From contig OZ176052.1 in the NCBI GenBank assembly GCA_964247055.1, positions 11,160,001 to 11,224,000 of the forward strand: 64,000 bases of DNA. The letters are read 5' to 3'. Both the position numbers and the translations under genes were made by a program. Positions 3,051-64,000 of this stretch are shown here, in pieces. The first letter of the stretch is position 1. Each line of letters starts with the position of its first letter. Source of the stretch: Paragordius varius (taxonomy: Eukaryota > Animalia > Nematomorpha). The notes beneath the pieces are model-generated. The model worked only from the letters and a program-made list of their open reading frames with translations, searched no databases and was not told the DNA's origin.

Positions 3051-4520
3051 CAATAAGGATTTCAGGTATTTTCTGTTTAAATGCAAAAATTTTAGTTGTG
3101 CGTTTTTTTATATTGGCTGCTGGGTAAACAGATACCCGCTAAAAACTCTCCCGTCATATCGAAATAGTTTTTTGGCTAAATTTCAGAAAACCTATCAGGC
3201 CATATGAATACTATACTTAAATATTAACCGTAACAAGGTAAAATTTAAGTCGAGCGTTTTTTTTAAACCGTTAATTAGGCTCTTTTACGCCCCCAAAAAT
3301 GCGCTATAATTGAACTATTATTTAGTTTTGAAGCCATTCTTCTAAAAACTATTAGGAACATATGGAATAAATAATGATTCCAGGTATTCCGCTATAAAGA
3401 CAAATTTTTTTATCAAACGTCTTTTTTATATTGGCCTCTGGGTAGGGGACTACCCGCTACAACTGCGCCACCATATCGATACAGCATGACTTTGGAGTTA
3501 GAAAACATATCAGGCCATACGAGTTGAATATGGGCTTGAATATTACCCGTAAAAAGGCAAAAATTTAAGTAGAACGGTTTAATTAAATTACCCCTTATTT
3601 AGGCCCTTCGCGCCCTAAAAAATGCGCCACCAAAGAATGACTTTTTGGTTAAGCAATTTTTTGAAAATGCCACGAGCATATGGAAGCAATCATGATTCCA
3701 ATTATTACCCGAATCGAGGCAAAAATTTTGATCGAGCGTTTTTTGCCCCTGGTTAGGGGGCGACCCGCCTAAAACTGCGTCACCATATCGATACAGCATG
3801 CCTTTTGAGCCAAATTTCATAAAACCTATGAGACTATGTGAGTTTCAATAATGGCCTAAAGTATTTACCCCTAAAAAAACAAATATTTTAGTATAGGGGG
3901 TTATTTTAATGGGTTGCTAAGTAAAATTAACGCCCTGAGAAATGCGCTAAAACAATTTTTTAGTTTTGAAGCAATATTTTCAAGACCTTATAGAAACATA
4001 TGGCATCCATGATAATTCCAGATATTCCTTCCCTATATAAAGGGAAAAATTTTGCTTAACGCTTTTTTATACCTGGCCCTGGGTAAGGCACCCGCCAAAA
4101 ACTGCGCCAATATATAGAAATTGCGTTGTTTTGGATAGCTAATTTTCACAAAATTTATGTAGCCATATGAGCCCATTAAAAGCTTGAAATATAACCCGTA
4201 ACTAGGTAAAAATTAAGGTCAGGGTTTTTTTATTAGCCGTTAGTTTGGAACCTTTATGCCCTAAAAATACGCCATAATATAATGATTATTTAGTGTTGAG
4301 GTATTTTTTCGAATAACCCATGAGGCGGTATCAAAGATGATTCCAAATATTTGCTTTATAAAGGCAAAGAATTTAACTCAGCGCTTTTTCCATATAGATC
4401 TATGGGTAGGGGTCTACCGGTTTAAAACTGAGACGCCATACAAAAAGCTAACAAAAAACCTAAGAAGCCATACGAGTTCATTATTTAAATATTACCCATA
4501 AAAAGGTAAAAATAGTTTTG
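3050..4520. repeat. Diverged tandem array, ~320-bp unit, about 5 copies
   Basis: The anchor (C)TGGGTA...ACCCGC.AAAACTGCG.CA.CATATCGATACAGCATG recurs near 3120, 3438, 3749, 4079 and 4402 (spacing 311-330 nt). An inverted fragment occurs at 51880-51960. Confidence 0.8.
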
Positions 4521-11900: not shown

Positions 11901-14900
11901 AAGGTTTTATGAGATAAAAAGATAAATAAATATCAGTTTGAAAACTATTTGTCGGATCATCTAACAACATGTGTTATAGTATCTGGCATAATGTCATCAT
12001 CATTTATCAATAATTTTCTAGGAATAGTATTATATCAATGTCGTGTTTATTAATAACCTAACATTGAATACTTTTAATTCTTATGTATACATATTTGCAA
12101 TGGAATATATTTTTATTCCTAACATATTGTTTAAATAACAGCATATTACCATTAATTCCTTAAATAATTGGCCATCTATTTAATTTAAAAATGAATAATA
12201 CTCATACCCTTTGAAACGTCAGTGGATGATTTGTCACTTTTGACCAAACTTTCAAAACAATTCAAACTTTTTTCATAACATGATATGGACTAATTAGAAA
12301 ATAAAAATTATTAAATTATAATCATAGGGTATTAGCAAAAAAACTTTTTAAGACAAAAGAGGAAAAACAAAGGTGTTATAGATATTTATTAAAAAGAAAG
12401 TCGTATATATAAATAAATTATTAGCAACTTAATTGGGTAAAAAGAAAGCTAAAGAATATAATGACGCGCAAAAAAATTTTAGGTTTAATTTCTGGTTCCG
12501 ACTCCAGTTTTCAGGTTTTTGCCAAAAAAAATTTGGTTAGATTATAGTCGAATTTAATTTCGTTATAATTATTAAATATAGTATTATTGATATAAATAAT
12601 CAAAAATTATTAAAAGATAGCAGCATAATATTATTCTATTGTAATCTTCTTGATCAAAATAATTATACTCAACGTATCATTATAACAATATTAAAAAAAT
12701 AAGGTTTAAAATGTCCTTGAAATTGAAAAACAAACATTTTATAAACCGCGGTTTTAGTTCGAAAAACGGTTTTAAAACGCTTTAGGAATGTTTTAGAGTA
12801 CATTTTAGTTGTAATAAAATAACTTAATTAAATGTTTTTTTAAATAACCTTAGAAAATCGTATTTTTAGGTACATTTGTCGAAGGTTAGATGCCGACTTC
12901 TCAATACAAATCTGAAAAAATTGGGCTCTACAATGAAGGAAAATAAGTTCAGCTAAATTGAGGAATGTTAATCCGGCATTTAGAGAATCTTCAACATCTT
13001 CATAGGCTTGAGTAATTTTTTCGTATAAATTTTCACAATAAACAGTTAACTCTTCAAATTTATCTACAAATGTGTAAAAAATAATAATTGTAATAAACAT
13101 GTAAATATTGTACCCAAAAAATGACATTAGCTTGAACTTTAAACTTTTTCCCAATAAATGATGGGTTCTTCAATATTCAACATAAAGCAAAATTTAATAC
13201 CAAATTGTGATTGTATGCCATCATGAATAGTTCTATCTTTTTGGTTTTGATGATACATCTCATTGAGTTTAAGGTAACAAGGTACATATTTGGTTTTGTA
13301 AACTAAGGTTATTTCATTACAAGCATTTGCATATTTCCTTAGCAAACGGATGCACAGACCCTTCCTATCCAATTCCTCTTCTGCAATTTTCCAAACCTTG
13401 TGATATAAAGTTTGACAATGCGTCAAAATTTTTAGGCGATCACTAAAAATGAAAAAAAAATGATATAACAACACGTAGGTTTTTATTAAAACTGTAGATA
13501 TATTTCCAAAAAACTTTTACATATATTAAATTTATATCAAATTACAACAAAATTAATATTTTTACGCTTAAATTCAATCAAAATTAAATATAAACAAATT
13601 ACTCTATTTCCATGTTTGCATCCAGTTTTTTATGATTATGACGGTAAAAATCTAAACGTATAACATATCGTATAAATAAACTTTTTTTCATAAGGATAAT
13701 ATTAAAATTATTAATATACCATACCTATATATTGAGACATATTTTCCACAGGACTGCTGTTCTTAAACATCTCATTGGTAACATTGAATACTTTACAGTA
13801 ATATCGTTGAAAATCGCTAGAGAACTTTTTGCATAACCCCGTTTTAGCCAATATTTTATGTAAAATTTTGATTTCAATATTAGTTTTGTGGCATGTACTT
13901 TTACAGCCCATTTCTTTATTTTGCTCGACGTTATCTTTTATATTTGGCTTTCCCCTATTTTCATTAGTTTTCAAATTATGCGTGATAGAGAGGATATAAT
14001 AGTCGGCTAAAGCTTCAAAACTATTGAATACAACGTTAATTGGATCGATCGATAGGGAAAATATATCATTCTTAAGGCTTAAACAATGAGTTGAAATGGC
14101 AACAAATGGTTCTAAATAGTTTAAAATAAAAATAATTTATTCGGAAAATTAAATTTTGGCTAATAAATCAATATAGTAGTAAATATAATGTATACCAATC
14201 AAGCCAATGACTTTATTGAAGATTTGTTCAGCCTCATTAAACAAAAAATGTTTCAAACAAAATTGAATAAGAGCCCCATGTATAAATAAGCTTTTATCAA
14301 GCAATTCGAAAGATGTATTCAGTAAATGTTTATCTAAAGAGATTGTTTCTGACAATAAGTTTGGTGTGATTAGAGTTATCATCTATAAATAATATTTTTC
14401 AAATCAATCATAACAAAAAATCAAGAGAGTTGAAGGAATGTTAAAAAAACTTACATCTTCAACGCAATTCATAACTTCCAACAAATCATACATGGTTAGG
14501 AGAGGGGAATTCTTTTCCGTTTTTGTGTGCTGTTTATTTGATTTTTTACCCAATTTTTTGCTCAGCGTTTGATGTTTATTGACGTGAGGTTTCGTTAAAT
14601 CCTGGTAATTTACTGAAGTCATTAATTGATGCATTCTCATATTCTGATTAATACTATAATAGTTTTGTAAGGAAGTTTCATTTATTTTATTAATTGTGTT
14701 TGTGGGCATTATTAATTCAATACAAGCTGCAAGTTTGAAGGAATCAATTTGTTCAGGTAAAATTGTTTCAATCAGAATTGAACAACTCATAGATAGTAAA
14801 TAACGATATTGCAACATAGTTGAATCATCTTGATCTAAAAAACATATGGCCAATATTATAATTTATGCTTTAAAAAATAATTTTTTAAAATATAACACAT

Positions 14901-17900
14901 TCAAACCTAAATTTATGAATCAAAATCAGTATCTCTATCAATTTTGTCATAAATACAGCAATTCAAATCATATACGTATGAAGATGTGCGTTTTTAATTA
15001 GATTGTTATTTAAATGTTATATTTAATTGTGAATATTACTGGAATATTTAATATGGGTATAATAAGGAACAGTATAATTTCTTTCATTAATGGAGCATTT
15101 TAATCGTAAACCCGATTTTTGGATATATAAAGACGGTATAACATATTTTAACGAGTAATGAAATTTCAATAGCTATAAAAATACCTGAAAAGTTATTGAT
15201 AGGATCACTAAACTTTTGTGCAAACTGCGTTTGATATTGTGCAATGCGTCCTGCCGTATCAGCCGTAATGTGTTGGCCAATCCAATCCTTGCCAAATATG
15301 GTTGGTAATGAAGATTTTACAATATTTCGGCATTGTTGAAGTAACATTTTACATGTTTCGGGTGAAGGCGCCAAAGTAAGAGGTGTATTATTTTTACACT
15401 TATGGTGTGATTGTCTATCCAATATATTGCCATCTTCTTGAAGTTGTTTTCGAATGTTTTCAGCTACTTTGAAAAGTAAAATAGCCACTGGTAAGGCATA
15501 GGGATTCGTTACTGTTTGATAATGCGCCACCTGCTGTTCCAAAGCATTCTGGCGAGCAGCTCGTTTCAGAGCTAGTGTGTTTTGATTAAAGGTAGTAAGT
15601 AAACTGGTTAAATCATATAATTTGACAATATCATCATCGGGTTCTTTGTACAACCAATATGTATGTCCTTGCCTAGTACACTTATTCCGTATGAATGACA
15701 ATAAATTCCTAGCCAAAGTTTTAATCAATTCGGGGTCAAATTTTGTGGTGTTTGATGAGGCTTTAGTGCCATTGACAGATTCTTTTCCATCATTTGCAAA
15801 TTTGGATGTATTGTTCAAAGAACGAGGGGAATCGTCAACGAAATCCAGAAGGGGAATTTCGGATGTTTTAAGCATTTCATAACTAGATATAATATTCATA
15901 TCCAATATATGCCTATATATTTAAAGTGAACTAAACAATACAAGTATATTCATATTTTTTCTTTAAGGTGCTAAAACATCCCAAAATGTTTGTGAAAACA
16001 AGTGTTAACAATATATTTATGATTCATTACCGTTGTATTAAACCATCCAAATGATAACACATAACTAGTTCTGGTACATTACACATCAAATTATCAAGCC
16101 AATAATCCAATCCAGTCAGGACATTTATGCCAGAGTCTTTGGCATCTTTAAGCCGTAAACTAATTGCTGGATACTTACCACACCCAAAGATGGGGAGATC
16201 GGATTTGATTAACATGGTTATATCCTCGAAATTCCATACATAATCCCGCGGTAAATCCCAAAACAATTGGTCAGAAACGCTACCTGGCATATGCATAGGA
16301 GTGGTAGGATCAAAATATTTTGGTGAACCTAACTTTTGACTCAGTTTAATAGCCGTATGAGACGATTCAAACTTGATAGGAGGACAGGGGAAATCGTCTT
16401 TAGCAGAAGTTATTGACCCGGAAGTATTATTTATTGAGAGATTTTGCAAACTTTCAAATGTTTCATTTTCGTTTGTACCTTTTGAGCTTACAATTATGTC
16501 ATTTTTTCCCGTTTGTTCATCCTTCCATGGTAAAGGCAAAGGGTCAAAAGTCCTTAAAAACTTTTTTTCAGGTTGCGTTAGAAATTTGTGACCTAAAGTT
16601 ATTGTGAAAATTATTTATTCTATTACGTTAACCAACAGAGCATTAATTTTCCAAAGATTACTGTACAATTTTTTTTTGCTTTGTAATAATGGTAGTATAA
16701 ATAAAAAATTCTCTGTCCCAATAAAGGGTAGTGCAGTTTAATTATACCCTAAAAATTGTTTTTTAAGATTTTTATATATAGATTCAGAGGTTAGATAAAA
16801 CTTAAAAATATTTGTAATTCCATTATCAGTCTTTGGTAATTTAATACGCAGGAAAATATTGCAAATATAAATGATTATATACCCATAGAGAGATCGTCAA
16901 AATCCTTTGAAAGTATTTCTTTAAATAAACGTCGACTAGAGAAGGGCATATGTGAGAATTGTTGAGTAAAATGCATTGTTTCAATGAACTTGGCTAATGA
17001 ATCCTGATTTTCCCAAAAACAAAAATCCTGCGACAAATCAATACATTCCTTCCAACTCAATGATTTCAAATGGCCGTTTTTGTTTAAATAACTATGATAA
17101 TTACGATTTAATTTTACTTGAGATAAAGATATTTAACTAACAACATTCTATATTCATGATCCATTTCTTTATACTGATTGATTTGGAATATATCAAGCTG
17201 TTATATATATATATATATATATGTAAATTTTGGGACCAATTTGCGTTTAAGGAGATTCAAAGTTTTCTACAGTGTAAATAATAGGCTCTCAATCCAAAAA
17301 ATGAGAGTGAAACGCTATATAAGAAATATCAAAAAACAAAATTCACTACACTAGCAAAATTTTTAGATGTTAAAATATGTTATCAAATTCAAGACTATAT
17401 TAAACAAAGGGATTCCGATCGCTTTAAATATAAAATTATAAGTATATTAAAAATTATGAACCGTTATTTTAAATTAAAAGACTCTATAAGCCCAAATAGA
17501 GTGTAAAGTTTAAAATACATGGGATTAATTAGAAAACATTGTAGTTTTGGAATTTAGAAGCCTGCCCTCAAAACTTTAAGTTCCTCTAAACTTATAATAG
17601 TGCCAAATTTAGTTCGATAAAATTCCAATACTTTTGAAAAAAAACCCAACAGCCTACATTTTCGAAAAAACGTGGAAGTCAAGGTGTTAATATAAAAAAT
17701 AAACCAAAAAACACATTTTCAGTAGTCGGCTTTTTATTACGTTACATTTTTGGAATGAAATTGGTTGAAAATTGCAAATAAATAGAATCTAGAGATAAAA
17801 CAATATGCTTGTGTTACAATTAGCTTAAAGGGTCTTCAAAATCAGACTTAAAATACAAAATATTTTGCCAAGAGTTCTTGAGATTAATTTTTTAGACAAT

Positions 17901-45248: not shown

Positions 45249-45677
45249 TCATAAAGAAACTAAATCTTTCCAAGGATCTTCAAGCATTTTTTTATTAAAA
45301 TAAATTTTATTTTTATAGTCAATGAACTCATCATCGTTTTGGGTATTGGCGTTTGTTTTTATTCTTTTATTTTGAATATTTTCTTGGTTGAATATCACAT
45401 TGTGAGTGGAGTGATTATTAAAATTTATTGGTCTTGGTAATCGATTTGTAAAATGTTGTGTAGGAATAGTATTGTGTGAAGGGACGCGGTAATGTGCATG
45501 TAATGGGAGCGAATTAGGATGCCTAAACATATCATGATGGGGATTAATAACATTATGAGGTAAAAAATGGTTATTCATATTGGGCCCTGAAGCTTGATTA
45601 TTCATAAAGTAAGGAATATGCCGAATATTTTGAGATCGTGGATTATAAGACGGTTGATAAAAATTTGACATATCCAT
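45249..45677 (-). CDS. MPLKIP: MPLKIP/TTDN1-like protein (142 aa, single exon)
   Basis: Pro/Asn/His-rich low-complexity body ending in YFNKKMLEDPWKDL, which matches the family's C-terminal signature (Y.K.SMLEDPW..L) as I recall it. Confidence 0.7.
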   Translation of the reverse strand: MDMSNFYQPSYNPRSQNIRHIPYFMNNQASGPNMNNHFLPHNVINPHHDMFRHPNSLPLHAHYRVPSHNTIPTQHFTNRLPRPINFNNHSTHNVIFNQENIQNKRIKTNANTQNDDEFIDYKNKIYFNKKMLEDPWKDLVSL

Positions 45678-47514: not shown

Positions 47515-48260
47515 TGCATGGTAGACCACAAAAGAAAACAATGAAGTGCAAGGGTTATTGCATGTTCAAACTCAACAGCAATTGACAGAAGCATTACATG
47601 TATCACACTATGACAGGGGAAGATTAAAAAACTCCGTAAATGGGGCACAGATATTGAAATGAACTTCAAATTGAAAATCGTAAAGCAATTAGTAAAACCC
47701 TGCTTTAAAGTCACAGAAAATCATTACATCGAATTGTGACGAGTGATGAGTAGCTTTATTTTGTAAATCCAAAATAGAATCTTAAATCTTGCTAAGCCGG
47801 TCTAAAACCAAAGCTGGGATCTGTTTCTGTTGGGACTAGAGCGGTTTTGTGTATGTTTCAAGGCGGAAACTGTTAATATACAACGCTATCGCCAAAGATT
47901 ATTTTAAACCATGCATTCATTGAAAAACAATCGGAATGAGACAAAAGTGATAATTATACATGACCATGCTCCGTTAAACATAGCAAAATCATTGAAGGAC
48001 AACTTTAAATCGCTTCGATGGGAAATATCTACGCATCCGCCGAACTCTTCGGACCTGGCGCCATCTGGTTGACATATCTTCGCGTCTATGGGAGACACTA
48101 ATTTTCAGGACATCGGGAAATAATTTGGCAAATGGTTTGTCTTATAAGACACTCTTTTTCTGGCATTGCGCTCATATATTATCTGAGAGATGGGCGATTG
48201 TGTAGAATCCGATAAAAAGGTTTTTATCAAATAAATAAATGGTTCCTTTACTAAAAAACC
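47515..48260 (+). mobile_element. Second degenerate Mos1-like mariner relic
   Basis: EVQGLLHVQTQQQLTEALHVS, LHRIVTSDE, VIIIHDHAP, LRWEISTHPPNSSDLAPSG. Same family as 620-1570; stops and frameshifts present. Confidence 0.85.
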
Positions 48261-48783
48261 AGTAAAAATTTATCACTAGACCTGATGGTATATGAAAGGT
48301 AATGAGGATAATGGTGACAAAGTTCGCCCGTCTCATTTTAAATATACACATGTTTAACATTTAAATAAATCTATCCTGTTTCTAACAAACGATTTTTTCA
48401 TATCAATATCCCTGTAAAAATAGACTAAATGACAGCAGGCTGTTACATTTAAAATAAACCAAGAGTTAATTAAAATGCGATGATCACAAAAATGTTAATT
48501 ACTGCCTTTTATTATGATAGTTCCATGATTAGAAGAAAACCTAAACTTAAAAACTATGTGGATTATTTTAATTGGAAAAATGAGTGAGGCTTTCCATTTT
48601 TACTTCTGGTTAAAAAACATTTATAAATATATTTACCAAAAATACATGTTTTTATAATTAGGTTACAGTTTTAGAATGGTCAAACATCTTAATTAAACTT
48701 ACATAAATAAAAATATAAAAAATAAAATATGAGTTTTTTATATTTATTTAATTTTTATTACATATTGATTGATAATTAATAAA

Positions 48784-49462
48784 TTATGGAAATGTCTTCC
48801 ATATCATAGGACCCATATTCATATATTCGAATCTCCTCGCACCATTTTTCATCGGACTTTTAGTTTTTAAACTGGACACAAAAGTTGAATTGCATACTTT
48901 ATCCATCTTTAGCTGATGACAAATCTTGATGGGATCTACATATTGATCAATTAAAAATACTTATAATTGATTATTAACATAGAATAGCTTTAAATAATAA
49001 ATTACCTTTTGTATCGCTGGGCCATAATTCGCCGGATTCATTCAAGGAAAAGAAAAAAGTAAATTTCTTTTTGGGAGATATTTTTTGAATCGGTGATAAA
49101 TTTTCGACAGCATTCGTATTGTCTAACACACTCTCTACAGAGGATTCGGATTTTTTTGAGTTTTGCGACCAAGACATATTCACATTGAGACTATCAATAG
49201 CTGAAATTTCGACATCAGTGTTTAGGTTCAAATATAGATTGGAATCTAATAAATAAATGAATAAGTAGTAATACATAATTCATTTTAGTTTAAAAAGTAT
49301 AACAATATGAATACCAGATATTGAAAGGTGTTGATTACTTTCAGACTCTGGTTTAAAACAAGAGAATCTTGAGAAAAGTGAAATAAACCAATGATAATTG
49401 CGTTTTCCACACTCAACATTTTTTGTGTGATATTTTCTTTTCCCAAACAATTTCATAGTCAA
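48784..49462 (-). CDS. Orphan 179-aa protein, array copy 1 (3 exons)
   Basis: Exons 49462-49315 (148 nt), 49245-49006 (240 nt) and 48935-48784 (152 nt), joined by 69- and 70-nt GT-AG introns. ATG to TAA without interruption. Confidence 0.72.
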
Positions 49463-51076
49463 AAGACGAATTTTTAGTTAAATATATAGTTAGTTTTGAT
49501 AGTTGTAAATGTTAAAGAATTTTAAATGATTAACCAAAATGATTGTTGTATGATATTGGTTGTTCTATTTTATATTATATAGTTTTGACATAAAAAAATA
49601 CTCTTTAAAATTTTTTATTATTAATTGAGATTTCTTTTTATGTTAATCATAATATGTAGTTTATCATTCATAGTTACAGAATAGAGTCAATCTTGGATAA
49701 GAGGCGTTTTGACAGTGCTAATTTTATTAATTATTAAATTTAAGTTAGTTATTATGCATCCGTTTTCAAAAATTTGGTTCTTATGTAAAAAGGAAACGGT
49801 TTTGATTCGATTTTTCCGAAATGTTGACAACACAAAAAAGCCGAGTTATATTTTTAAATTGTTAAATCTCTTTTTATGCGGGAAAGATTTTGTAAAAAAG
49901 TTTCATAAATAGTCATAATTCTAAATTCAAATATTTTGTCTTGTATATTTAGCAAGCATAAAAATGGAAAATAAACTTATTATGTGTTAAAAATATTTGG
50001 GGTAAAAAGTATACCTATTATACTATACGGTAAAAGGCGCACGGGTTCAATGCTTATACCTCTCTGATTTCATTGCTAAATATAACAAAAACACCTTATG
50101 AAAATTATAAATATTATCCCATTTTAAAATAGGAGAAGGACCATTTTTAAAAAACGCACAAAAAACTGTGTATCCCTCGCTATAAAGACTCAAATTGTTT
50201 ATAAAAGATATGGTCGTAATCAGCATCCTAACCTCTCACTTAGAATTTCTAATTATTTTTCTATTATATAACCAATTTTCATGTTTAGGGTTCCTTTAAA
50301 TAATAATTGTTTAAAGTCAATTTAATTCTCCCAAAAGAATTAGGTTGTGGTTATTTTTGAGAAATTAAAAATTTATCAATTTTTTAATTAGATATTGTTC
50401 AATCGGATAGGTATCTATTTAAGTTTAAGATTACTGTTTATTAAACTTATTATGACGGGGTTAGGGTTATACTCCAATGTATTTTGGAACAGGTTTGCTA
50501 TACAGTCCACTTTAATTAGAAAAATCTTGAATTGATCTAATTTGATAACTGTTTTGAAGCCGTTTCTTAAACTAAAATCAATTTAAATAATTTACGGTGT
50601 CAGGTTTTACATTAAAAATAGGGGGGAAGAGTTGTAACCGATAAGATACAACTATTTAATAAAGAACACGTGTTAATTCTCAGAATTTTAAGAAACAGTG
50701 ATGATTGCTAAAATGATTTGTCAAGCGTTTTGTGAGTAAACCAACAACTTTATGAATCCGTTGGTTTTATATTGCACAGACCAAAATTTATATACTATTT
50801 TACAAAAAATTTGTCGTGTAATGAATTATTTATTATTAATAATTGGTTAGTTTATCTCTTTGTTTAAAAATATAATGGTTGCTAAATACTACGTTTGCTT
50901 AATTTAAATTTAGTAATCATTAATATTTTCTCAATATAATTATTTGTGGACTTTTTAATTGAGCAATCAAACTGGTAAATATAACATATTCCATTTCCAT
51001 TGCACAAAAATAAATTCCTGGAATTCTTACATAAAATTATAGTTAGTTAGATCCCCAACAAATATTATAATTTCTA

Positions 51077-51960
51077 CTAGCGTGAATCTCGTGCTACTAA
51101 GCAGCCCGAGGAAGTCCTTCGGACTTCTGGGGGGAGGGGGAGCTTTTTGAAAAAAGGGACAATAAAATGATCCACATATGTGGATTATTTCGAAACATTA
51201 TTTAATAGCTATGATCTCATAGGAATTTCAAAACGGGGCATTCATACTAATATATTTTTTACTTGGGCGAAAAATAGATTCAAAAAATTATTTCTGTCGA
51301 CTTTTTTTTTTTAAAAAATGGCATTTTACGGGCGGGTAAAGAGAGGGCCTAAATTAAAAAAGCGAGACGACTATGTTCGGCGCAATCGAAAATAACTAAA
51401 TCATATTTGAAATTGAATGATCCAACACGTTCTGATTGGCTCAAAGACACGATTTTTGTGGACTTGTTTTCAAAAAAAACCCGTTTTTACACAGGGTGGG
51501 CCCGAAACGGGGCCTAATTCAAAAAAAAGGCGAAGCTATTGTCGGGGCATTCATTAATGATTATATTTTTTCGACATTTGAATTTGAATGCGTCTACAGG
51601 TTTACCGGAAACAGATCACAAAGTCAGCATTTTCCATTTTTATAAATATATAGATAACCATAAATAATGTTTTATTTTCCAAATATTTTTTAATATCCTA
51701 TACATATGATAGATAAATAAATAATAAAACAACAAACTAATACGATTTTATGATTAAAATGAATAAAGTCTGATTGATCATTTGTGTGTCTCGTTTGAAT
51801 ATTGAGATAGACAATTTTATTTGAAATGAGCATAATATATTTTTGATTTTATAAGCAATTTTGTTATGCGGCACGAAGTTTAAAAAGGATTTACATAGTC
51901 TCATAAGTTTGAAATTTGGCTCCAAAGACATGCTGTATCGATATGATGGGGCACTGTCTT
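51077..51960 (-). mobile_element. Helitron-like 3' end fragment inserted in the array
   Basis: On the minus strand it ends in CTAG (51077-51080) at a host A|T site (empty site TTTCTA|TTCCGC in other units), with no TSD. Hairpin GAAGTCC-TTC-GGACTTC at 51111-51127. The body matches 2650-3050 and the 320-bp unit. Confidence 0.55.
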
Positions 51961-52219
51961 TTAATATAATAGTTCCATGATGAGAAAACTTTAACTTAAA
52001 AACTATGTGGATTATTTTGATTGGAAAAATGAGTGTGGCTTTTATTTGTGGTTGAAAAACAGTTATAAATATATTTACCAAAAATACAAGTTTTTATAAT
52101 TTGGTTTAAGTTTTAGAATGGTCAAACTTCTTATTTTTAAAATTTACATAAATAAAAAAAATAAAAAATGAGTTTTTTATATTTATTTTAATTTTTATTA
52201 CATATTGATAATTAATAAA

Positions 52220-52908
52220 TTATGGAAATGTCTTCCATATCATAGGACCCTTATTCATATATTCGAATCTCCTCGCACCATTTTTCATCGGACTTTTAGT
52301 TTTTAAACTGGACACAAAAGTTGAATTGCATACTTTATCCAGCTTTTGCTTATGACAAAACTTGATGGAATTTACATATTGATCTGATCAATTTAAAAAA
52401 TACTTGTAATTGATTATTAACATAGAATAGCTTTATATAATAAATTACCTTTTGTATCGCTGGGCCATAATTCGCCGGATTCATTCAAGGAAAAGAAAAA
52501 AGTAAATTCCTTTTTGGGAGATATTTTTTGAATCGGTGATAAATTTTCGACAGCATTCGTATTGTCTACCACACTCTCTACAGAGGATTCGGATTTTTTT
52601 AAATTTTGCGACCAAGACATATTCACACTGAGACTATCAATGGCTGAATTTTCGACAGTAGTTTTTAGGTTCAAATGTAGATTGGAATCTAATAAATAAA
52701 TTAATAAGTAGTAATACATAATTCATTTTAGTTTAAAAAGTATAATAACAATATGAATACTAGATATTGAAAGGTGTAGATTGCTTTCAGACTCTGATTT
52801 AAAACAAGAGAATCTTGAGAAAAGTGAAATAAACCAATGATAATTGCGTTTTCCACACTCAACATTTTTTGTGTGATCTTTCCTTTTCCCAAACATTTTC
52901 ATGGTCAA
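52220..52908 (-). CDS. Orphan protein, array copy 2 (183 aa via a shifted acceptor)
   Basis: Exons 52908-52761 (148 nt), 52688-52449 (240 nt) and 52383-52220 (164 nt). The ancestral acceptor AG is now AA; a new CAG 12 nt upstream keeps the frame. Confidence 0.62.
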
Positions 52909-53869
52909 AAGACGAGTTTTAGTTTTAGAATATAGTTAGTTTTGATAGTTGTAAATGTTTAAAAATTTTAAATGATTAACCAAAATGATTGTTGTATAAT
53001 ATTGGTTGTTCTATTTTTTATTATATAAATGGTATTTGACATAAAAATACACTTTATGTTTTTGTTATTAACTCTTTTGTTAATCATACTATGTAGTTTA
53101 TCATTCATGTTAAAGATTGTTAGTGTCAATCTTGGATAAGAGGCGTTTTGGCAGTGCTAATTTTATTAATTATAAGTTAGTTATTATGCTTCTGTTTTCA
53201 AAAATTTGGTTCTTATGTAAGGAAGTTTTGATTCGGTTTTTCCGAAATGTTGACAACACAAAAAGCCGAGTTATGTTTTTGAATTAATTAAATCTCTTTT
53301 TCTGCGGTAAAGATATTGTGAAAAAGTTTTCAAATATTTTGTCATGTGTATTTAGCTAGAATAAAAATGGAAAATAAACTTTTTTTGTGTGCATTTGGGG
53401 TAAAAACTATACCTATTATACTATACGGTAAAAGGCGCACGGGTTCAATGCTTATATCTCTCTGATTACAATGCTAAATATAACAAAAACACCATAAAAA
53501 TTATAGATATCCCATTTAAAAATAGAAGAAGGACCATTTTTAAAAAATGCACAAAAAACTGTGTATCCCTCGCTATAATGACTCAAATTGTAGGAAAAGA
53601 CATGGCTCGTAATCCGCATCCTAACCTTTTTCTTAGAATTTCTAATTAAATTATTTTTGTATTATAAAACCAATTTTAATGTTTAGTCCTAATTTTTAAA
53701 TAATTATTGTTTAAAATCAAATTATTTTTCCAAAAGAACTAGTTTGTGGTTATTTTTTAGTTAAAGGTTTATCAGTTTTTTAATTAGATATTGTTCAATC
53801 GAATAGGTAGCATCATTTAAATTTAAAATTACTGTTTATTGGACTTATTAAAGGGGTTAGGGTTATACT

Positions 53870-56800
53870 TAAGGTGACCAGACGTCCCGCTTTTGGCGGG
53901 ACAGTCCCGCTTTTTCACATTTTGTCCCGCGTCCCGCTGCGTTTTTAAAATGTCCCGCTTTTTCACGATTATATAAAAAAAAATTTTTTTAATTCAAATT
54001 TTATCCGTTTAAATTTTTAAATATCTTTAAAATCTATTCAATTTTAAATTAAATTTTTTTATTTTAAATTAAAAATATTTATTTTTTTCGAATTTATATC
54101 ATATGATTATACACTTTGCTTCCTACTACTACTGCATTATCAAAAAGCCAAGTTAATACCACAAATCTCTAGATTAAAAGACAAATTAATGCCACAAATC
54201 GGTAGCTAACACGTTTATTTCAGAAAATTAAGGTGATATAATATTTACTGTGTTATCATTTTAGTTTTATTACTTGCTAACATATCAAAAAGCCAAATTA
54301 ATATAATATAATATTTATTATACTAATAGTAGTTTATAATATGAGCACAAAAAGAGGTTGTAAATTGATGAATTAATGATAGATTTTCCTTTTATCAAAA
54401 AACGAAGAATGAATCATCTGTTAAATGTCTTATATGCGAGGGGGAATTCACCCTAGCACATGGCGGCAAGCATGATATTACAAAGCATATGGAAACACAG
54501 AAACATAAAAAATGTTTAGATATGGCGGCATCATCTTACAAAATGAGCGATTTTTTTCGAAAACCGCTTTTGGAGAGGAAGAGAAGAATTTTTCACGCCG
54601 TTAATCACAATCATCCCTTTAGATCTATGGACTGTACCTCACAGGCTATTCGCACGTTATTCCATAAAAAATTTACATGTGCCCGTACAAAGGCTGAAGC
54701 CATTGTGTGCAATGTCCTTTCGCCACATGCATTTTCTGAAATACAAAAAGATTTGCTGAAAATTAATTTCTTATCCCTATACTCTGATGCATCAAATCAC
54801 CATGAAACAAAATTATTTCCCACTTTAATAAGATATTTTGATTCAGAAACCGGAGTAAAAATTAAAATTTTACATTTAATATTTACTTCAATAATGCATA
54901 TTCTAGAAAAAAATAATTTAAAAGACAAAATTATCGCATATTGCGCTGACAACACCAATACGAACTTTGGTGGAAAAGCAAGGAGGGGAACAAAAAATAT
55001 TTTTCATAAATTAACACATAATCTTAATCAAAACATAATTGGCGTTGGGTGTGCAGCGCATATAAAACATAACGCTATTCAAACAGCTGCTGATTTGTTA
55101 CCCTTAGATGTGAAAAATGGATTTGTTAAAATATATACCTATTTATATATATAAACGGTACGTTTTGAAACGCTTAAAGAATTATGTGAAAATGCAGAAG
55201 TTCAATATCAAAAAATGCTTGGATATTGTATGACTCGTTGGTTAGCTTTTATGCCAGCTATCAAAAGAATTTTAAAAATGTATGATCCTTTAAAATCATT
55301 TTTTATAACAGGACAAATGTCCTACAACTTTAAAAAAAGTTTTTTGAAAGTGATTCTTCAAAAATATGGTTAGAATTCTTACATAATCAAGCTTCTCTCT
55401 TTCAAAATGTTATTAAATTTATAGAAGGTGACAAAATTTCGGCAATCGAAGTAGCCAATGAAGTTAGTAACCTAATTCCAATGTCAAGAACGGTTAGAAA
55501 ATAATTTTACACCATTAACCATCGGCAATATAATAAATAATTTAGAAAAACAAGGCTTAATAAATCGCCAAGATATCCTGTACCATATAAAAATGTTTTA
55601 TACAAACTGTAAAAATTATTTGGAAGACTGGACGACGCAATTCAATGAAATTGATCATTTTCATTGGATAACATTAAAATCAGAATTAATTGGTGCGATG
55701 TTCAAAAATCATTTGATTATTTCTGTTCCCAAAAATTTAGTTAAAAGATATATTAATAATGAACTTAAATTATGGACAAAAAATATACAGTAGAAAAGAA
55801 ATGGTTGAAAATATTTCATCATTTTGAAGCCAACCTATATTACATACAATAATATTTTAAAAATTGTGGAATTCGCACTATCTTTACCTGGAACCAACTT
55901 TGCTACTGAGCGCGTTTTTTCCACAGTAAATCACGTGTGGACATCGGAAAAATCAAATTTAAATGTTGAAACTTTAAAGGCCGTTTTATCTGTCAAATAT
56001 AATTTGACAAATTCTTGTGAAGACTTCTACAATATTTAAGAAATGATGACAATCTGCTAAAAATTCACTCAAACAACAAAAAATATACCAATACCAAAGA
56101 ATAAAATATTTTCTTATATAAACATTTTATGTTAAAAAATAAACAAAATTAATCAAAATATTGTATAAGTCTTCATAGTTTGTCAAATTATATTTGAACA
56201 CATAAAATGGCTTTTATTCAACATTTAAATTTGATTCCGTGTTACTTAATTTACTGTGGAAAAGCGCGTTCAATAGCAGTGGTTCAGGTAAAGATAATGC
56301 GAATTCTACAGTTAAAATATTATTGTATGGAACATAATGTGTTTAAATGATTATTTTAACCATTTCTATCCTACGTATTTTTTTCTGCTATCCATAATAT
56401 AAGTTTTCATTCAATATATTTATTTAATAATGAGACTTCATAAAAAAGTGTCATTGTGCACCGTCTTGTCTTCCAAATAATCGTTTCTGTTTGTATAAAA
56501 CATTTTTATATTCTGGCTATTCATTGAGCCTTGTTTTTCTGGATGCTTTATAATATTGCGATTAGGTAATGGTTTAAAATCATTTTCTAACCTTTTTTGA
56601 CTTGGAATTTTGACCTTTGTCCTGTGATAAAAAATAGGATTCTAGGGAATCACATTTTTATAAATATTTCAATCACCGGCAAAAGAGCTAACAAACAGTT
56701 CTACAATATCCAAGCATGTTAACATCTATATTTTCCACATCCAGGGGTAACAAATCAGTAGCTGGAATAGCGTTGTGTATCTGCCAATAATGTTTTGATT

Positions 56801-57114
56801 AAGATTATTCGCGAAATTGTTAAAAAAAATTTGTGCCGCTTCTTGCATCACCCAGCGCACTTTGAGATGATTTCGTCTTTAATATTTTTTTCTAGAATAT
56901 TACAATCACTTCACCCTTTGTTCGTGCACATGTAAATTTATTGAATAAGGTACAAACAACCTGTAAGGTACAAATTTTTTTATATCTATAATGTATTTGT
57001 GTTTAATGCAAAATTTTTTATACATTTTTTGTATAAAAAATTTTGTTTGTACCCCCAATGACCCCCCTTCTCAGATTTGTCCCGCTTTTTCCTTCGAAAA
57101 ATCTGGTCACCTTA
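53870..57114 (+). mobile_element. 3245-bp hAT element with perfect TSD
   Basis: TIRs TAAGGTGACCAGA / TCTGGTCACCTTA with GTCCCGC subterminal repeats. TSD GTTATACT at 53862-53869 and 57115-57122. The empty site is visible in other array units (~50468, ~61487). Confidence 0.95.
54341..56040 (+). pseudogene. Frameshifted hAT transposase
   Basis: N-terminal C/H finger (CLICEGEF..HGGKHDITKH), SDAS and CADNTNTNFG acidic motifs, GCAAHIKHN (CxxH), TRWL, and LPGTNFATERVFS (catalytic E region). Split across several frames. Confidence 0.9.
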
Positions 57115-57953
57115 GTTATACTCCACTATATTTTGGAACATGACTGCTATACAGTCCACATAACATATTAAAGAATCTTGAACTGATCTAATTTGGATGA
57201 CCGTTTAAATGCCGTTTCTTAAACTAAAATCTATTTTAAAAAAATTACGCTGTCAGATTTTACATTGAAAATAGGGGGGAAGAGTTGTAACTGCTAAGAT
57301 AAAACATATGTTTATAAAGAACAGGTGTTAATTCTCAGAATTTTATGAAACGGTGATGATTGCTAAAAATATTTGCAAAGCGTTTTGTGAGCTAACCAGC
57401 AATTCCAGGCAATAAAAATAAAAACGTATGAATCCCTTGGTTTTAAATTGCACCACCAAAATTTTTATACTATTTTACAAAAAATTTGTCTGTAATCAAT
57501 TACTTATTATTTATTAGTTTATCTCTTTGTTTAAAAATCTAATGGTTGCTAATTACTACGTGTGCTTAATCTTTAATTTTTATATAATTATTTGTGGACT
57601 TTTTAATTTAGCAATCAAACTGGTAAATATAACATATTCCGTTGCACAAAATAAATCTGAAAATAAAATTATAGTTAGTTAGTTCCCCAACAAATATTAT
57701 ATTTTCTATTCCGCAATATTATATATAGTTCTTTCATTACACTACACACATTTGAAAAAATCTATAAAATGACAAAATAATAATAAAAACATATATTACA
57801 AATGTCATATTGTTTGTTTTTAAAAAGGGAAATATCTACGCATAAACTGAACTCTACGGACCTCGTGCCATGGTTAACATATCTTCGCGTCTATGGGACA
57901 CAGTAATTTTGATGACATCGGGAAATAATTTGACAAATGGTTTGTCTCATAAG

Positions 57954-59258
57954 TAGGGTTGTGCCCATTAGTTAATGACCTAGGGTCATTACCTAGGTCA
58001 TGATTTTTTATTTTTTTTAATTTTTTATTTTTTTTAGAATTTTTAGGAAAACAAAACCTTATATTATTTATATACGTATTATTTCGTTTTAAATATCATA
58101 TGATACACATCTTTTCTTTACTTCCTAAATCATTATGAAATCAGCCTTGTGGAAATTTTTCGATCAAATAATTCCAGTTACAAGCAAGAAATGCAATTAC
58201 ACTATATATATTTAAATAAAAACCGAATGAAGAAACATCTAAAAGAAGTTCATGAAATAAATTATATGACAGAAGGTGATGGTCGAAAAGCAAGCTAATA
58301 AGCTTAGTGTTAAAAATTTCTGTTTTCAAGAGAAATTAGCCAGAAACATTTAACAAAATTTATTTAAAAATCATCAAAACATAGTTGAAAATAAACATTT
58401 TCGGAGTATTCATAGTTTAAACCTAATTATGCTATTCCAAATAGAAAACAGATTTCCAATAAATTACTAGATTCATGTAATGAAGAAATAAAAATAGAAT
58501 TGGAATATGTAAAAATAATATTTCATTAATCGTGGATACCTTTACCAATATTCGTAGGGAGCAAATAATTAAAATTATTGGCCAAAGATCCTAAAAATCA
58601 TTTTTATTAACTATTGACACACCTTATCATAGTAAGATTGCCGAATATATCCATAACATAATGGAACCAATTATAAAAGATATTGGAAATGAAAAAAATT
58701 ATTGCCATTGTGACCTTTAATGCAGCGACACGAAGGCTCTGAAAATTTGATTAATAAAGAATATCCTAAAATAATATGGCATGTATGCTAATGTCATATA
58801 ATAAATAATTCGATCAAAGAATATATTAAACCTAATAAGATTACTGAAATTTTAAATGTAGCGAGTATGATTATATATTAAATCTAATAAATCGTATAAA
58901 AAATTTCAAAGTATAAAAAAACTTTGAACCATCCTAAGTTAACGTAAAGTTTATGGACAGTGACTCGTTTTTACACATAAAAAATTAGAGCATAAATAAG
59001 TTTCAATAAATCCATATTTTCTCGTTAGTTTTAGCTTTCTGTTGAAACTTTCTATAAGTCTTTATGTATGATTCCAGGAAAGATCGTTAATTGTGGAAAT
59101 ATAAATTATCAGGATTGGTGAAAGCATAATTTTAAAAAATATATACTTTATGTAAAAACCTTTTTTATGTGATTTAATCAAATATTTATGTATGTAGTTA
59201 TACATTATTGGCAATAACATATGGTATGACCTAGGTCGAACCGTCCGACCTAGGCCTA
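57954..59258 (+). mobile_element. 1305-bp internally deleted hAT element (DUF659-like transposase remnant)
   Basis: Perfect TSD CTCATAAG at 57946-57953 and 59259-59266. TAGG termini with GACCTAGG subterminal repeats. Remnants SLIVDTFTNIRREQII, IIAIVTFNAA, EYPKIIWHVC*CHIIN. Confidence 0.88.
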
Positions 59259-59809
59259 CTCATAAGACACTCTTTTTCTGGCATTACGCTCATAACCTGA
59301 GAGATGGGCGAAATGTGTAGAATCCGATAAAAATATTTTCAATAAAATAAATAAATAGTTCCATTACTAAAAAAACAGTAAAAACTTATCACTAAATCTG
59401 TAACATTTAAATAAAATTATCCTGTTTTCAATAGACGATTTTTTCATATCAATATCCCTTTAAAAATGGACTAAATGACAGCAGGCTGTTACATTTAAAA
59501 TAAACCAAGAGTCAATTAAAATGCGATGATCACAAAAATGTAGGTTACTGCCTTTTATTATAATAGTTCCATGCTTAGAAGAAAACATAAACTGAAAAAA
59601 TTGGAAAAATGAGTGAGGCTTTTCGTTTTTATTTCTGGTTAAAAAAATTATAAATATATTTACCAAAAATACAAGTTTTTGTAATTAGGTTAAAGTTTTA
59701 GAATGGTCAAACTTCTTAATTTTAAAACTTACATAAATAAAAATATAAAAAATATAACATGAGTTTTTTATATTTATTTAATTTTTATTACATATTGATA
59801 ATTATTAAA

Positions 59810-60492
59810 TTATTCAAATGTCTTACATATCATAGGACCCATATTCATATATTCGAATCTCCTCGCACCATATTTCATCGGACCTTTAGTTTTTAAACTT
59901 GTCACAAAAGTTGAATTGCATACTTTATCCATCTTTTTCTGATGACAAAACTTGATGGGAGCTATATATTGATCAATTTATCAATATTTATAATTGATTA
60001 TAAACACAGAATAGCTTTATATAATAAATTACCTTTTGTATCGCTGGGCCATAATTCGCCGGATTCATTCAAGGAAAAGAAAAAAGTAAATTCCTTTTTG
60101 GGAGATATTTTTTGAATCGGTGATAAATTTTCGACAGCATTTGTATTGTCTACCACACTCTCTACAGAGGATTCGGATTTTTTTGAATTTTGCGACCAAG
60201 ACATATTCACACTGAGACCATCAATGGCTGAATTTTCGACAGTAGTGTTTAGGTTCAAATGATGATTGGAATCTAATAAATAAATGAATAAGTAGTAATA
60301 CATAATTCATTTTAGTTTAAAAAGTATAATAACAATTTGAATACTAGATATTGAAAGGTGTTGATTGCTTTCAGACTCTGGTTTAAAACAAGAGAATCTT
60401 GAGAAAAGTGAAATAAACCAATGATAATTGCGTTTTCCACATTCAACATTTTTTGTGTGATATTTCCTTTTCCCAAACATTTTCATAATCAA
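59810..60492 (-). CDS. Orphan 179-aa protein, array copy 3
   Basis: Exons 60492-60345 (148 nt), 60272-60033 (240 nt) and 59961-59810 (152 nt). All splice sites are GT-AG and there are no stops. Confidence 0.72.
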
Positions 60493-62941
60493 AAGACGAG
60501 TTTTAATTTAGAATATAGTTAGTTTTGATAGTTGTAAATGTTAAAGAATTTTAAATGATTAACCAAAATGATTGTTGTATGATATTGGTTGTTCTATTTT
60601 TTATCATATAGTTTTGACATAAAAATACTCTTTAAATTTTTTTATTATTAATTGAGATTTCTTTTTAAGTTATGTAGTTTATCATTCATAGTTACAGATT
60701 GTTAGAGTCAATCTTGGATAAGAGGCGTTTTGGCAATGCTTATTTTATTAATAAAATGAATTTTAGTTAGATATGAGTATCAATCCATTTTTTATATAAT
60801 CAATATATATTTTAAGTATGAACATGATCGCTTACGTTTTCAAAAACTTGGTTCCCATGTAAAAAAGAAACCGTTTTGATTTGGTTTTTCCGAAATGTTG
60901 CCAAAACACAAAGCCGAGTTATATTTTTAAACTAAAGTTAAATCTCTTTTTATGCGGTAAAGATATTGTGAAAAAGTTTTTTGTCACGTATATTTAGCTA
61001 GCATAAAAATGGAAAAAAACTTATTTTGTGTGAAAAAGTATACCCAGCATACTATACGGTAAGGCGCACGGGTTCAATGCTTATACCTCTCTGATTTCAA
61101 TGCTAAATATTACAAAAACACCTTATAAAAATTATAAATATCCCATTTTAAAATAGAAGAACCTTTTTTAAAAACGCACAAAAACGGTTTGGTACTGTAG
61201 ATCGCTCGTTATAATGACTCGAAGTAGGGAAAAACATGGCTCGTGATCCGCATAACCTCTTACTTAGAATTTCCAATTAAATTATTTTTGTATTTAATGT
61301 TTAGGGTTGCTATTTTTAAATTATAATTGTTTAAAGACAATTTCTTTCTCCCAAAAGAACTAGTTTGTGAGGATGTTTAAGAAGTAAAAAATTTATCAAT
61401 TTTTTAATTAGTTTTTGTTCAATAAAATAGGTAGCATTATATGAGTCAAAATTATTGCTTATTGGACTTATTATAAAGGGGTTAGGGTCATACTCCACTG
61501 TATTTTGGAACTGCTATACAGGCCACTTTACATAGAAAAATCTTGAACTGATCTAATTTTAATAACCGTTTTGAAGCCGTTTCTTAAACTAAAATCCATT
61601 TTAAAAAATACGGTGTCAGATATTACATTGAGAATACGGGGGAAATAATTAAGAGTTGTAACCGATAAGACACAACATATGTTTATAAAGAACAGGTGTT
61701 GATTCTCAGAATTTTAAGAAACAATGATGATTGCTAAAATGAGTTGTAAAGCGTTTTGTTAGTAAACCAGCAACTTTAGAATCCGTTGGTTTTAAATTGT
61801 ACAGGCCAAAATTCAATTCTATTTTACAAAAAATTTGTCGTGTAATCAATTACTTATTAATAATTAGCTTATCTCTTTGTTTAAAAATATAATGGTTGCT
61901 AATTACTACGTTTGCTTTATCTAGATTTAGTTAATCTTTGATTTTTTCAATATAATTATATGTGGACTTTTTAATTGAGTAAACTGGTAAATATAACATA
62001 TTCCGTTGCACAAAAATAACCTGGAATTCTTACATAAAATTATAGTTAGTTAGTTCCCCAACAAATATTATATTTTCTATTCCGCAATATTATATATATT
62101 CATTTCTTTCATCAAAAATTTATAAAATGACAAAATAATAATAAAAACATATATTACAAATGTCATATTGTTTGTTTTTAAGAAGGGAAATATCTACGCA
62201 TCCGCTAAACTCTTCGGACCAGGCGCCATCTGGTTAACATATCTTCGCGTATATGGCAGACACTAATTTTGATGGCATCGGGAAATAGCTTGACAAATGG
62301 TTTGTCTTATAGGACACTCTTTTTCTGACACTGCGCTCATATATTACCTGAGAGATGGGCGAAATGTGCAGAATCCGATAGAAATATTTTAAATAAAATA
62401 TATAAATGGTTTCATTACTGAAAAACAGTTAATACTTATCACTAAACCTGATGGTATATGAAAGGCAATGAGGATAATGGTAAGTTCGCCCACCTCATTT
62501 TTAATATACACATGTTTAACATTTAAATTAATCTATCCTGTTTCCAATAAACGATTTTTTCATATCAACCTCCCTTCAAAAATAGACTAAATGACAGCAG
62601 GCTTTTATATTTAAAAGAAACCAAGAGTTAATTAAAATGCAATGATCACAAAAATGTTGGTTACTGCCTTTTATTATAATAAAGTTCCATGATTAGAAGA
62701 AAACTTTAACTTAAAAACTATGTGGATAATTTTGATTGGAAAAATGAGTGAAGCATTTATTTCTGGTTAAAAAACATTTTTTAATATATCTACCAAACAA
62801 TACAAAGTTTTTGATTTAATAAGGTTAAAGTTTTAGAATGGTCAAACTTCTTAATTTTAAAACTTACATAAATAAAAATATATAATAAAACATGAGTTTT
62901 TTATATTTATTTATTTTTATTACATATTGATAATTATTAAA

Positions 62942-63618
62942 TTATGGAAATGTCTTCCATATCATAGGACCCATATTCATATATTCGAATCTCCTCGCAC
63001 CATTTTTCATCGGACTTTTAGTTTTTAAACTGGACACAAAAGTTGAATTGCATACTTTATCCATCTTTTGCAGACGACAAAACTTGATGGGATCTATATA
63101 TTGATCTATTTAAAAATACTTGTAATTGATTATTAACACAGAATCTCTTTATATAAATTACCTTTTGTCTCACTGGGCCATAATTCGCCGGATTCATTCA
63201 AGGAAAAGAAAAAAGTAAATTCCTTTTTGGGAGATATTTTTTGAATCGGTGATAAATTTTCGACAGCATTCGTATTGTCTACCACACTCTCTACAGAGGA
63301 TTGGGATTTTTTTGAATTTTGCGACCAAGACATATTCACACTGAGACTATCAATGGCTGAATTTTCGACAGAAGTGTTTAGGTTCAAATGTAGATTGGAA
63401 TCTAATAAATAAATGAATAAGTAGTAATACAAAATTCATTTTAGTTTGAAAAGTATAATAATATGAATACTAGATATTGAAAGTAGTTGATTGCTTTCAG
63501 ACTCTGGTTTAAAACAAGAGAATCTTGAGAAAAGCGAAATAAACCAATGATAATTGCGTTTTCCACACTCAACGTTTTTTGTGTGATATTTCCTTTTCCC
63601 AAACATTTTCATAGTCAA
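62942..63618 (-). CDS. Orphan 179-aa protein, array copy 4
   Basis: Exons 63618-63471 (148 nt), 63401-63162 (240 nt) and 63093-62942 (152 nt). All splice sites are GT-AG and there are no stops. Confidence 0.72.
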
Positions 63619-64000
63619 AAGACGATGTTTTAGTTTTAGAATATAGTTAGTTTTAATAGTTGTAAATGTTTAAGAATTTTAAATGATTAACCAAAATGAT
63701 TGTTGTATGATATTGGTTGTTCTATTTTATATTATATAGGTTTGACATAAAAATACTTTTTAAAATTTTATTATTAATTTAGATTTCTTTTTAAGTTCAT
63801 AATATGTAGTTTATCATTCTTAGTTAAGGATTGTTAGAGTTAATATTGGATAAGAGGCGTTTTTAGTACTTTTTTATTAATTTAATAATTAAAGTTAGAT
63901 ATAAATATCAATCCATTTTTATATAATCTATATATATTAGTATGAACAAGATCGCTTCCGGTTTAAAAAATTGGTTCCCATGAAAAGGAAACCGTTTTGA

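Follow-up and report, generated by a model that had tools for sequence, protein, structure and literature searches.

An eleven-copy tandem orphan gene family with a selected reading frame in the horsehair worm Paragordius varius

A 64,000-bp stretch of contig OZ176052.1 of the horsehair worm Paragordius varius (assembly GCA_964247055.1, positions 11,160,001 to 11,224,000; the whole stretch is referred to here as the window) contains the beginning of a tandem array of a small three-exon gene. A whole-assembly search revealed 11 head-to-tail copies of this gene, all on the same contig (C3) between 11,208,017 and 11,260,564, a region of about 52.5 kb, and one diverged paralogue on a different contig (C6). 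With 11 copies gathered in 52.5 kb, a reading frame under selection and dead copies (5, 6 and 8) standing beside intact ones, the family is a tandem orphan gene family evolving by birth-and-death with gene conversion, with 11 members on C3 and one dispersed member on C6. It is very probable that the repeated unit carries a real gene under selection. A preliminary description of the window, made from the sequence alone, had reported an array of four copies, all of them intact. The array proved to continue past the window to C3:11260564, and the statement on intactness held for the four copies in the window and failed for copies 5, 6 and 8 beyond it.

Four copies of a 690-bp segment lie on the minus strand of the window, each inside a unit of about 3.1 kb. 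As had been described, all four carry an open three-exon frame interrupted by GT-AG introns, which are 68–77 nt long. In copy 1, exons of 142, 240 and 152 nt encode a product of 177 aa, and both introns are GT-AG and in phase 1. The 148-nt first exon and the 179-aa product given in the preliminary description had to be revised, as the first "Met" of that model is a TTG codon; translation from the ATG at 49456 gives 142 nt and 177 aa, and this start is supported by the C6 paralogue, which begins at the same Met. In copy 2, the usual AG acceptor of intron 2 is gone; an in-frame CAG that arose 12 nt upstream through a 6-bp duplication would replace it, so that exon 3 is predicted to be 164 nt long, the length previously noted for one copy. 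An extra AG, also 12 nt upstream of the normal intron-2 acceptor, is present in copy 4 (window 63094-63107). Other intron-2 acceptors were ruled out because the C6 paralogue fixes the last frame.

Across the array, the GT donors (22 of 22), the AG acceptors (21 of 22), every ATG and every TAA are kept, and judging from these signals the gene is presumably spliced. The frame is open in eight of the 11 copies (1–4, 7, 9, 10 and 11). Copy 5 is broken by a stop at codon 75 and additionally carries a 1.1-kb transposon in intron 1, copy 6 by a 1-nt deletion at codon 110 and copy 8 by a stop at codon 62. The coding lesions of all three are located in exon 2, which makes up 45% of the frame; with a chance probability of about 0.09, this clustering is only a hint.

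The selective constraint on the frame was evaluated in an alignment of the 11 whole units, with the neutral indel rate taken either from the spacer or from a co-amplified mariner fragment. A single indel was detected in 534 exon sites in comparison with 270 in 2575 non-exon sites, the exon expectation being 56 at the spacer rate and about 28 at the mariner-fragment rate. The introns showed spacer-like indel rates and the depletion ended sharply at the exon borders, which it thus follows. The earlier claim that exons are spared the indels seen in introns and spacers was in this way confirmed. Only two nonsense variants were observed, relative to about 14 expected at spacer rates. In simulations of neutral decay, which disregard conversion between copies, the mean number of open copies was 0.1–0.5, and 2.2 with the rates cut to half and quarter, in comparison with eight observed; none of 2000 runs reached eight.

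The exon variants comprised 88 non-synonymous and 30 synonymous changes, in agreement with the reported abundance of amino-acid-changing substitutions. Measured against the spacer mutation spectrum, the ratio of non-synonymous to synonymous change (omega) was about 0.34 for exon 1 (P=0.006), 1.14 for exon 2 and 1.09 for exon 3, with an overall value of 0.80 and a pairwise pN/pS (ratio of non-synonymous to synonymous differences per site) of about 0.6. The reading frame is maintained by selection and exon 1 is under purifying selection. The depletion of indels and stops, the neutral simulation and the exon-1 omega together support the proposal of an amplified gene family under selection. Signs of positive selection were not found: no exon was clearly above an omega of 1 and conversion tracts are present as well, so that the results lend no support to the suggestion of possible diversification.

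In exons 2 and 3, synonymous and non-synonymous changes each occurred at about half of the spacer rate, and gene conversion is a likely cause of this reduction. An identical tract of 603 bp is shared by copies 8 and 9, and exon 3 is identical between copies 8 and 9 and between copies 4 and 7, in the latter pair although the upstream spacers differ by 13%.

The query with exon 1 detected one further locus in the genome, on C6, with 45% identity over residues 1–40 (E 3.6e-5 genome-wide). The first eight residues are the same as in copy 1 and the first 36 form a conserved block, in which the Trp-Phe-Ile-Ser and Ser-Cys-x-Lys-Pro pattern is kept. The end of exon 3 recurs 780 bp downstream as Asn-x-Gly-Pro-Met-Leu-Trp-Arg-Ser-Thr-Pro-stop, and the most plausible last acceptors are likewise in phase 1. 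The start, the N-terminal block, the last frame, the stop and an upstream 18-mer are thus kept in order within 1 kb, and the paralogue supports the predicted start, last frame and stop independently of the array. The simplest models of the C6 gene give about 150–170 aa, with a provisional exon structure; no counterpart of exon 2 was found at this locus. Profile searches of the genome revealed no third family member, and an exon-2 match at C1:7101130 (E 0.22) was ruled out, being located inside an unrelated frame of 1295 aa. About 5 kb downstream of the C6 paralogue lies a 791-aa open frame for a reverse transcriptase of the LINE (long interspersed nuclear element) type (L031:1203-3578, minus strand; RVT_1).

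Upstream of the gene is a conserved block whose 18-bp core recurs without mismatch in 10 copies of the array, 97 nt before the ATG, and in the C6 paralogue, where the distance is 128 nt. The block is probably a promoter or 5'-untranslated region element. A reversed 18-bp control pattern had two genome matches at one mismatch and the other matches of the motif stayed at this control level, so at the stringency used it does not mark a genome-wide regulon; most of these matches fell in one unrelated dispersed repeat or were coding coincidences.

The predicted protein has an isoelectric point (pI) of 9.3, with nine basic residues and one acidic among residues 1–36 and an acidic, Ser/Thr/Asn-rich region at residues 37–105. 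Hydropathy analysis revealed neither a signal peptide nor a membrane-spanning helix (maximum 19-residue hydropathy of 0.52), as regards the signal peptide in accordance with the preliminary description. The AlphaFold2 model of exon 1 contained a helix at residues 11–29, best at 21–30 (predicted local distance difference test, pLDDT, of 72); the hydrophobic moment of this segment is high in both paralogues (0.53 and 0.61–0.69). The model of exon 3 showed no stable secondary structure. Both ends of the protein are conserved and the middle is variable.

The interpretation favoured by these features, which is given somewhat less than an even chance, is that of a small cytosolic adaptor or tether with a membrane-bound, basic, amphipathic and Cys-bearing N-terminus, a disordered linker and a C-terminal binding motif. 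The product would be a basic cytosolic protein of 20 kDa in three parts. Residues 1–36, comprising a polybasic stretch, the amphipathic Trp-Phe-Ile-Ser helix and Ser-Cys-x-Lys-Pro, would bind the membrane surface, with S-acylation of the Cys perhaps securing the attachment. The acidic Ser/Asn-rich middle would serve as a disordered, weakly constrained spacer, and the last 11 residues (Asn-x-Gly-Pro-Met-hydrophobic-Trp-basic-Ser/Thr-x-Pro) as a short binding motif. Such a tether would bring a partner to the membrane; the upstream element common to the copies would determine in which tissue or stage this happens, and the array would raise the dose of the tether. Dosage amplification is plausible, and three of the 11 copies have decayed.

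Several ESCRT-III N-termini read as the Met-x-Leu-Phe-Gly-Lys-Arg type, and the array protein is alike in its short hydrophobic-basic N-terminus. The ANCHR helix of ESCRT-III proteins is an amphipathic N-terminal membrane anchor (PMC11275535). The array protein differs in lacking the Snf7 domain (no Pfam match in any exon) and in the predicted disorder of its remaining part; it is not a member of ESCRT-III and would at most work like an ANCHR anchor.

Several observations weigh against a functional gene encoding such a tether. Synonymous change is not in excess in exons 2 and 3, whose lower divergence may in part be due to conversion. Between C3 and C6, the differences within the conserved blocks are spread evenly over the codon positions (9/10/11), so this comparison carries no codon-level signal. 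The structure models of exons 1 and 3 are of low confidence (mean pLDDT of 61 and 53), and the polybasic N-terminus fits a nuclear localisation signal equally well. Three possible RNA runs of useful size with the same species label contain almost none of the sequence words of the locus, which is weak evidence and not proof of silence. None of the runs containing the locus is recorded as RNA, and four unlabelled runs contain 27–51% of its words, which fits either DNA or RNA. A unit that is not now a functional protein gene, whether a decaying or non-coding repeat kept uniform by conversion or a transcribed non-coding unit, would be consistent with an omega of about 1 in exons 2–3, the three broken copies of 11, the conversion tracts of up to 603 bp and the lack of a transcript among the runs checked. 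However, conversion spreads lesions as readily as it repairs them, the indel depletion stops at the exon borders with the introns being spacer-like, exon 1 shows a synonymous excess and the unlinked C6 paralogue keeps start, frame and stop, which leaves this explanation very improbable. A role as a small basic nuclear or nucleic-acid-binding protein, for example in germline or sperm chromatin, is unlikely, although it is the most probable of the alternatives. The Lys/Arg cluster would then be an import or binding signal and Ser-Pro-x-Lys, found at residues 104 and 154, would be cell-cycle phosphorylation sites; the pI of 9.3 and the basic clusters at both ends also agree with it, and amplification in tandem, with one upstream element common to the copies, is characteristic of germline genes. 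On the other hand, bulky hydrophobics and a Cys are among the residues kept between C3 and C6, and a protein that is simply basic would have no need of them; the translated C6 stretches contain no Ser-Pro-x-Lys site and the middle of the protein is acidic. Little probability is assigned to a membrane-anchored phosphotyrosine adaptor using Tyr-Met-Asn-Met at residues 165–168, which would dock SH2 domains of PI3-kinase p85 and of the Grb2 type in the way known from CD28. This motif is exact in copy 1, is kept in 10 of the 11 copies and adjoins the conserved C-terminal motif, with a disordered linker leading to the putative membrane anchor. Nevertheless, the C6 paralogue has no Tyr at the site, the motif was picked out among many possible ones and its conservation among copies is uninformative because exon 3 was homogenised by conversion.

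The two remaining explanations concern the origin of the sequence. Exon 1 might descend from the duplicated 5' part of the gene for ribosomal protein eL37 with its RNA-binding role kept, the zinc ribbon having been lost, new exons gained and the gene amplified eleven-fold for a stage- or germline-specific role; both the derivation and this fuller scenario are improbable. The eL37 chains were the top PDB matches of exon 1 (E 0.22–0.5), residues 4–36 of the array protein resemble eL37, best that of this genome, with 15 identities over a 33-residue span of equal length, the shuffle P for this single comparison was about 1e-5 and the eL37 gene is located 1.0 Mb from the array on C3. Nonetheless, the match corresponds to an E of 0.09 when scaled to 10,000 proteins, a chance frame among only 95,000 residues scored 49 in comparison with 52, and no similarity was found at the DNA level, where the score equalled the shuffled mean. 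Only two of the four zinc-ligand Cys align, so that a four-Cys zinc ribbon is not present, and the Pfam profile PF01907 had no match in the array and found only the true gene (C3:12283008). Moreover, the C6 paralogue lacks the central matches (score 22) and the intact copies 9 and 11 alter matched residues. The eL37 gene itself contains two GT-AG micro-introns of 22 and 23 nt (L051:1637-1658 and 1744-1766, C3 ~12.283 Mb), whose removal joins the flanking frames into a continuous eL37 sequence. It is hardly credible that the 3.1-kb unit represents a mobile element, of the Helitron type or another, with the open frame as its cargo. The genome is rich in DNA transposons, every unit begins with a mariner fragment and the minus-strand end starts with TC, but the gene and its upstream spacer match only the array locus genome-wide, and the missing dispersed copies largely refute this idea. 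In addition, neither edge of the array bears terminal repeats, a target duplication or a CTRR-type end, an older mariner remnant is interrupted by the left edge and no transposase-like match was obtained.

The homology searches were run exon by exon; those based on a word index have length limits, and the first two of them were blind to full-length relatives. Exon 2 gave no match in the word-index search of 5.8 billion proteins, and neither the N-terminal alignment nor C6 exon 1 had a credible homologue in the same set. An exhaustive search of 1.84 billion representatives used exon 2, the least conserved part, and its sole match, a bacterial repeat protein (E 5.6e-4), was rejected as compositional. 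The exon-level searches of PHROGs, PDB, Atlas, metagenome contigs and Pfam revealed no credible homologue, with no Pfam match for any exon. Within the limits of such searches, whose scope stopped short of a direct query of other nematomorph genomes, the family looks lineage-restricted, as had been suggested.

Drosophila Sdic and Stellate are examples of this type of array, and not homologues. Tandem orphan arrays generally resemble the one described here in the head-to-tail arrangement of a small gene, an older dispersed paralogue, dead copies, conversion tracts and a shared upstream element. The horsehair-worm array differs from Sdic and Stellate in having no sequence relationship to them and in providing no evidence of conflict or positive selection. 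The description of the locus as an undescribed system was overstated, since it is one orphan gene in an ordinary birth-and-death array without a second component.

The six listed junctions between units are all at the same point. On the left, the array edge interrupts the old mariner-like remnant, and on the right it consists of unique sequence; no more than 2 bp are common to the two edges. The whole-unit tree is star-like with upstream spacers 10–14% apart, and a divergence of this size ruled out assembly duplication as the cause of the copies. In the simplest account of the array, a single duplication of the 3.1-kb segment joined non-homologous points that share 2 bp of microhomology, and unequal crossing-over then multiplied the units in a burst; reinsertion from a circle is a possible alternative. 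Since then the array has taken up transposons, undergone gene conversion across the exons and lost three copies. About 12 later transposon insertions were identified, none of them in exons, which is not significant alone (P ~0.1). Coordinates of the features in the window are given in the table.

Table. Features of the array within the window (window coordinates)
Feature	Position	Strand	Remarks
Copy 1 exon 1	49315..49456	-	142 nt from ATG, phase-1 donor; basic N-terminus, amphipathic helix, Cys
Copy 1 exon 2	49006..49245	-	240 nt, symmetric phase 1-1; Ser/Asn-rich acidic linker
Copy 1 exon 3	48784..48935	-	152 nt to TAA; C-terminal motif common with C6 paralogue
Copy 2	52220..52902	-	exons 52902-52761, 52688-52449, 52383-52220
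Copy 3	59810..60486	-	exons 60486-60345, 60272-60033, 59961-59810
Copy 4	62942..63612	-	exons 63612-63471, 63401-63162, 63093-62942; exon 3 identical to that of copy 7
Conserved upstream block	49530..49571	-	38 of 42 columns invariant in 11 copies; 18-bp core 49554-49571
Array portion in window	48017..64000	-	head-to-tail ~3.1-kb units; continues past window to C3:11260564 (11 units)
Mariner-like transposase remnant, part	48017..48258	+	cut by left edge of array; co-amplified at unit starts
Further co-amplified mariner remnant parts	57827-57953 plus 59259-59374; 62182-62426		
Transposon fragment, unit 1 spacer	51077..51961	.	sits at deletion of unit sequence
hAT-like element upstream of copy 2	53870..57114	+	terminal inverted repeats, 8-bp target duplication
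DNA-transposon insertion	57954..59258	.	splits unit 3 mariner fragment; 8-bp target duplication

The remnant at the left edge is presumed to be of mariner type from the frame at 47911-48072, with no database match behind this assignment. The hAT-like element upstream of copy 2 contains part of its own interior a second time, inverted and diverged, and a related remnant was found at about 71942-73078 in array coordinates. In unit 4, a broken LINE-type reverse-transcriptase element is present (C3:11224429-11226588; RVT_1). The insertion in intron 1 of copy 5 is 1,119 bp long (C3:11229038-11230156), is located about 10 nt upstream of the acceptor and has CAC...GTG ends and a 3-bp TAA duplication; it resembles a Chapaev3-type element. 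Units 9 and 10 carry the same hAT-like miniature element at the same site (C3:11252006-11252642 and 11256226-11256876), which indicates that part of the array was re-duplicated or converted after the insertion.

The nearest gene-like frame to the left of the array is a single-exon frame of 142 aa on the minus strand (window 45249-45677), with a weak C-terminal match to MPLKIP (PF15502, E 5e-4, below the cut-off). An EDRF1-like gene with several exons (PF23788) was identified at window positions 12840-16539 on the same strand. In the mitochondrial contig C44, near-perfect palindromes with arms of 131, 39 and 97 nt were found inside the nad1, cox2 and atp6 frames (L066:53-314, 3351-3428 and 4064-4257), together with a 72-bp tandem repeat of hairpins just upstream of cox1 (773-1472). 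Palindromes in mitochondrial coding sequence are known on an exceptional scale from Nematomorpha, and some in nad1 and atp6 are shared (PMC6649704). The palindromes of C44 thus support the assignment of this genome to the phylum.

As a class, the family is ordinary, as tandem orphan arrays occur in many animal genomes, and in an undersampled phylum the orphan status may merely reflect missing neighbours. If the eL37 origin were true, the family would show in traceable form how an orphan gene was born from a core ribosomal protein. With the diverged paralogue, the focus narrows to a pair of short protein motifs and the 18-bp element upstream. Because horsehair worms are a poorly studied parasitic phylum, an amplified orphan gene that is under selection and has no outside relatives is a fair candidate for lineage-specific biology.

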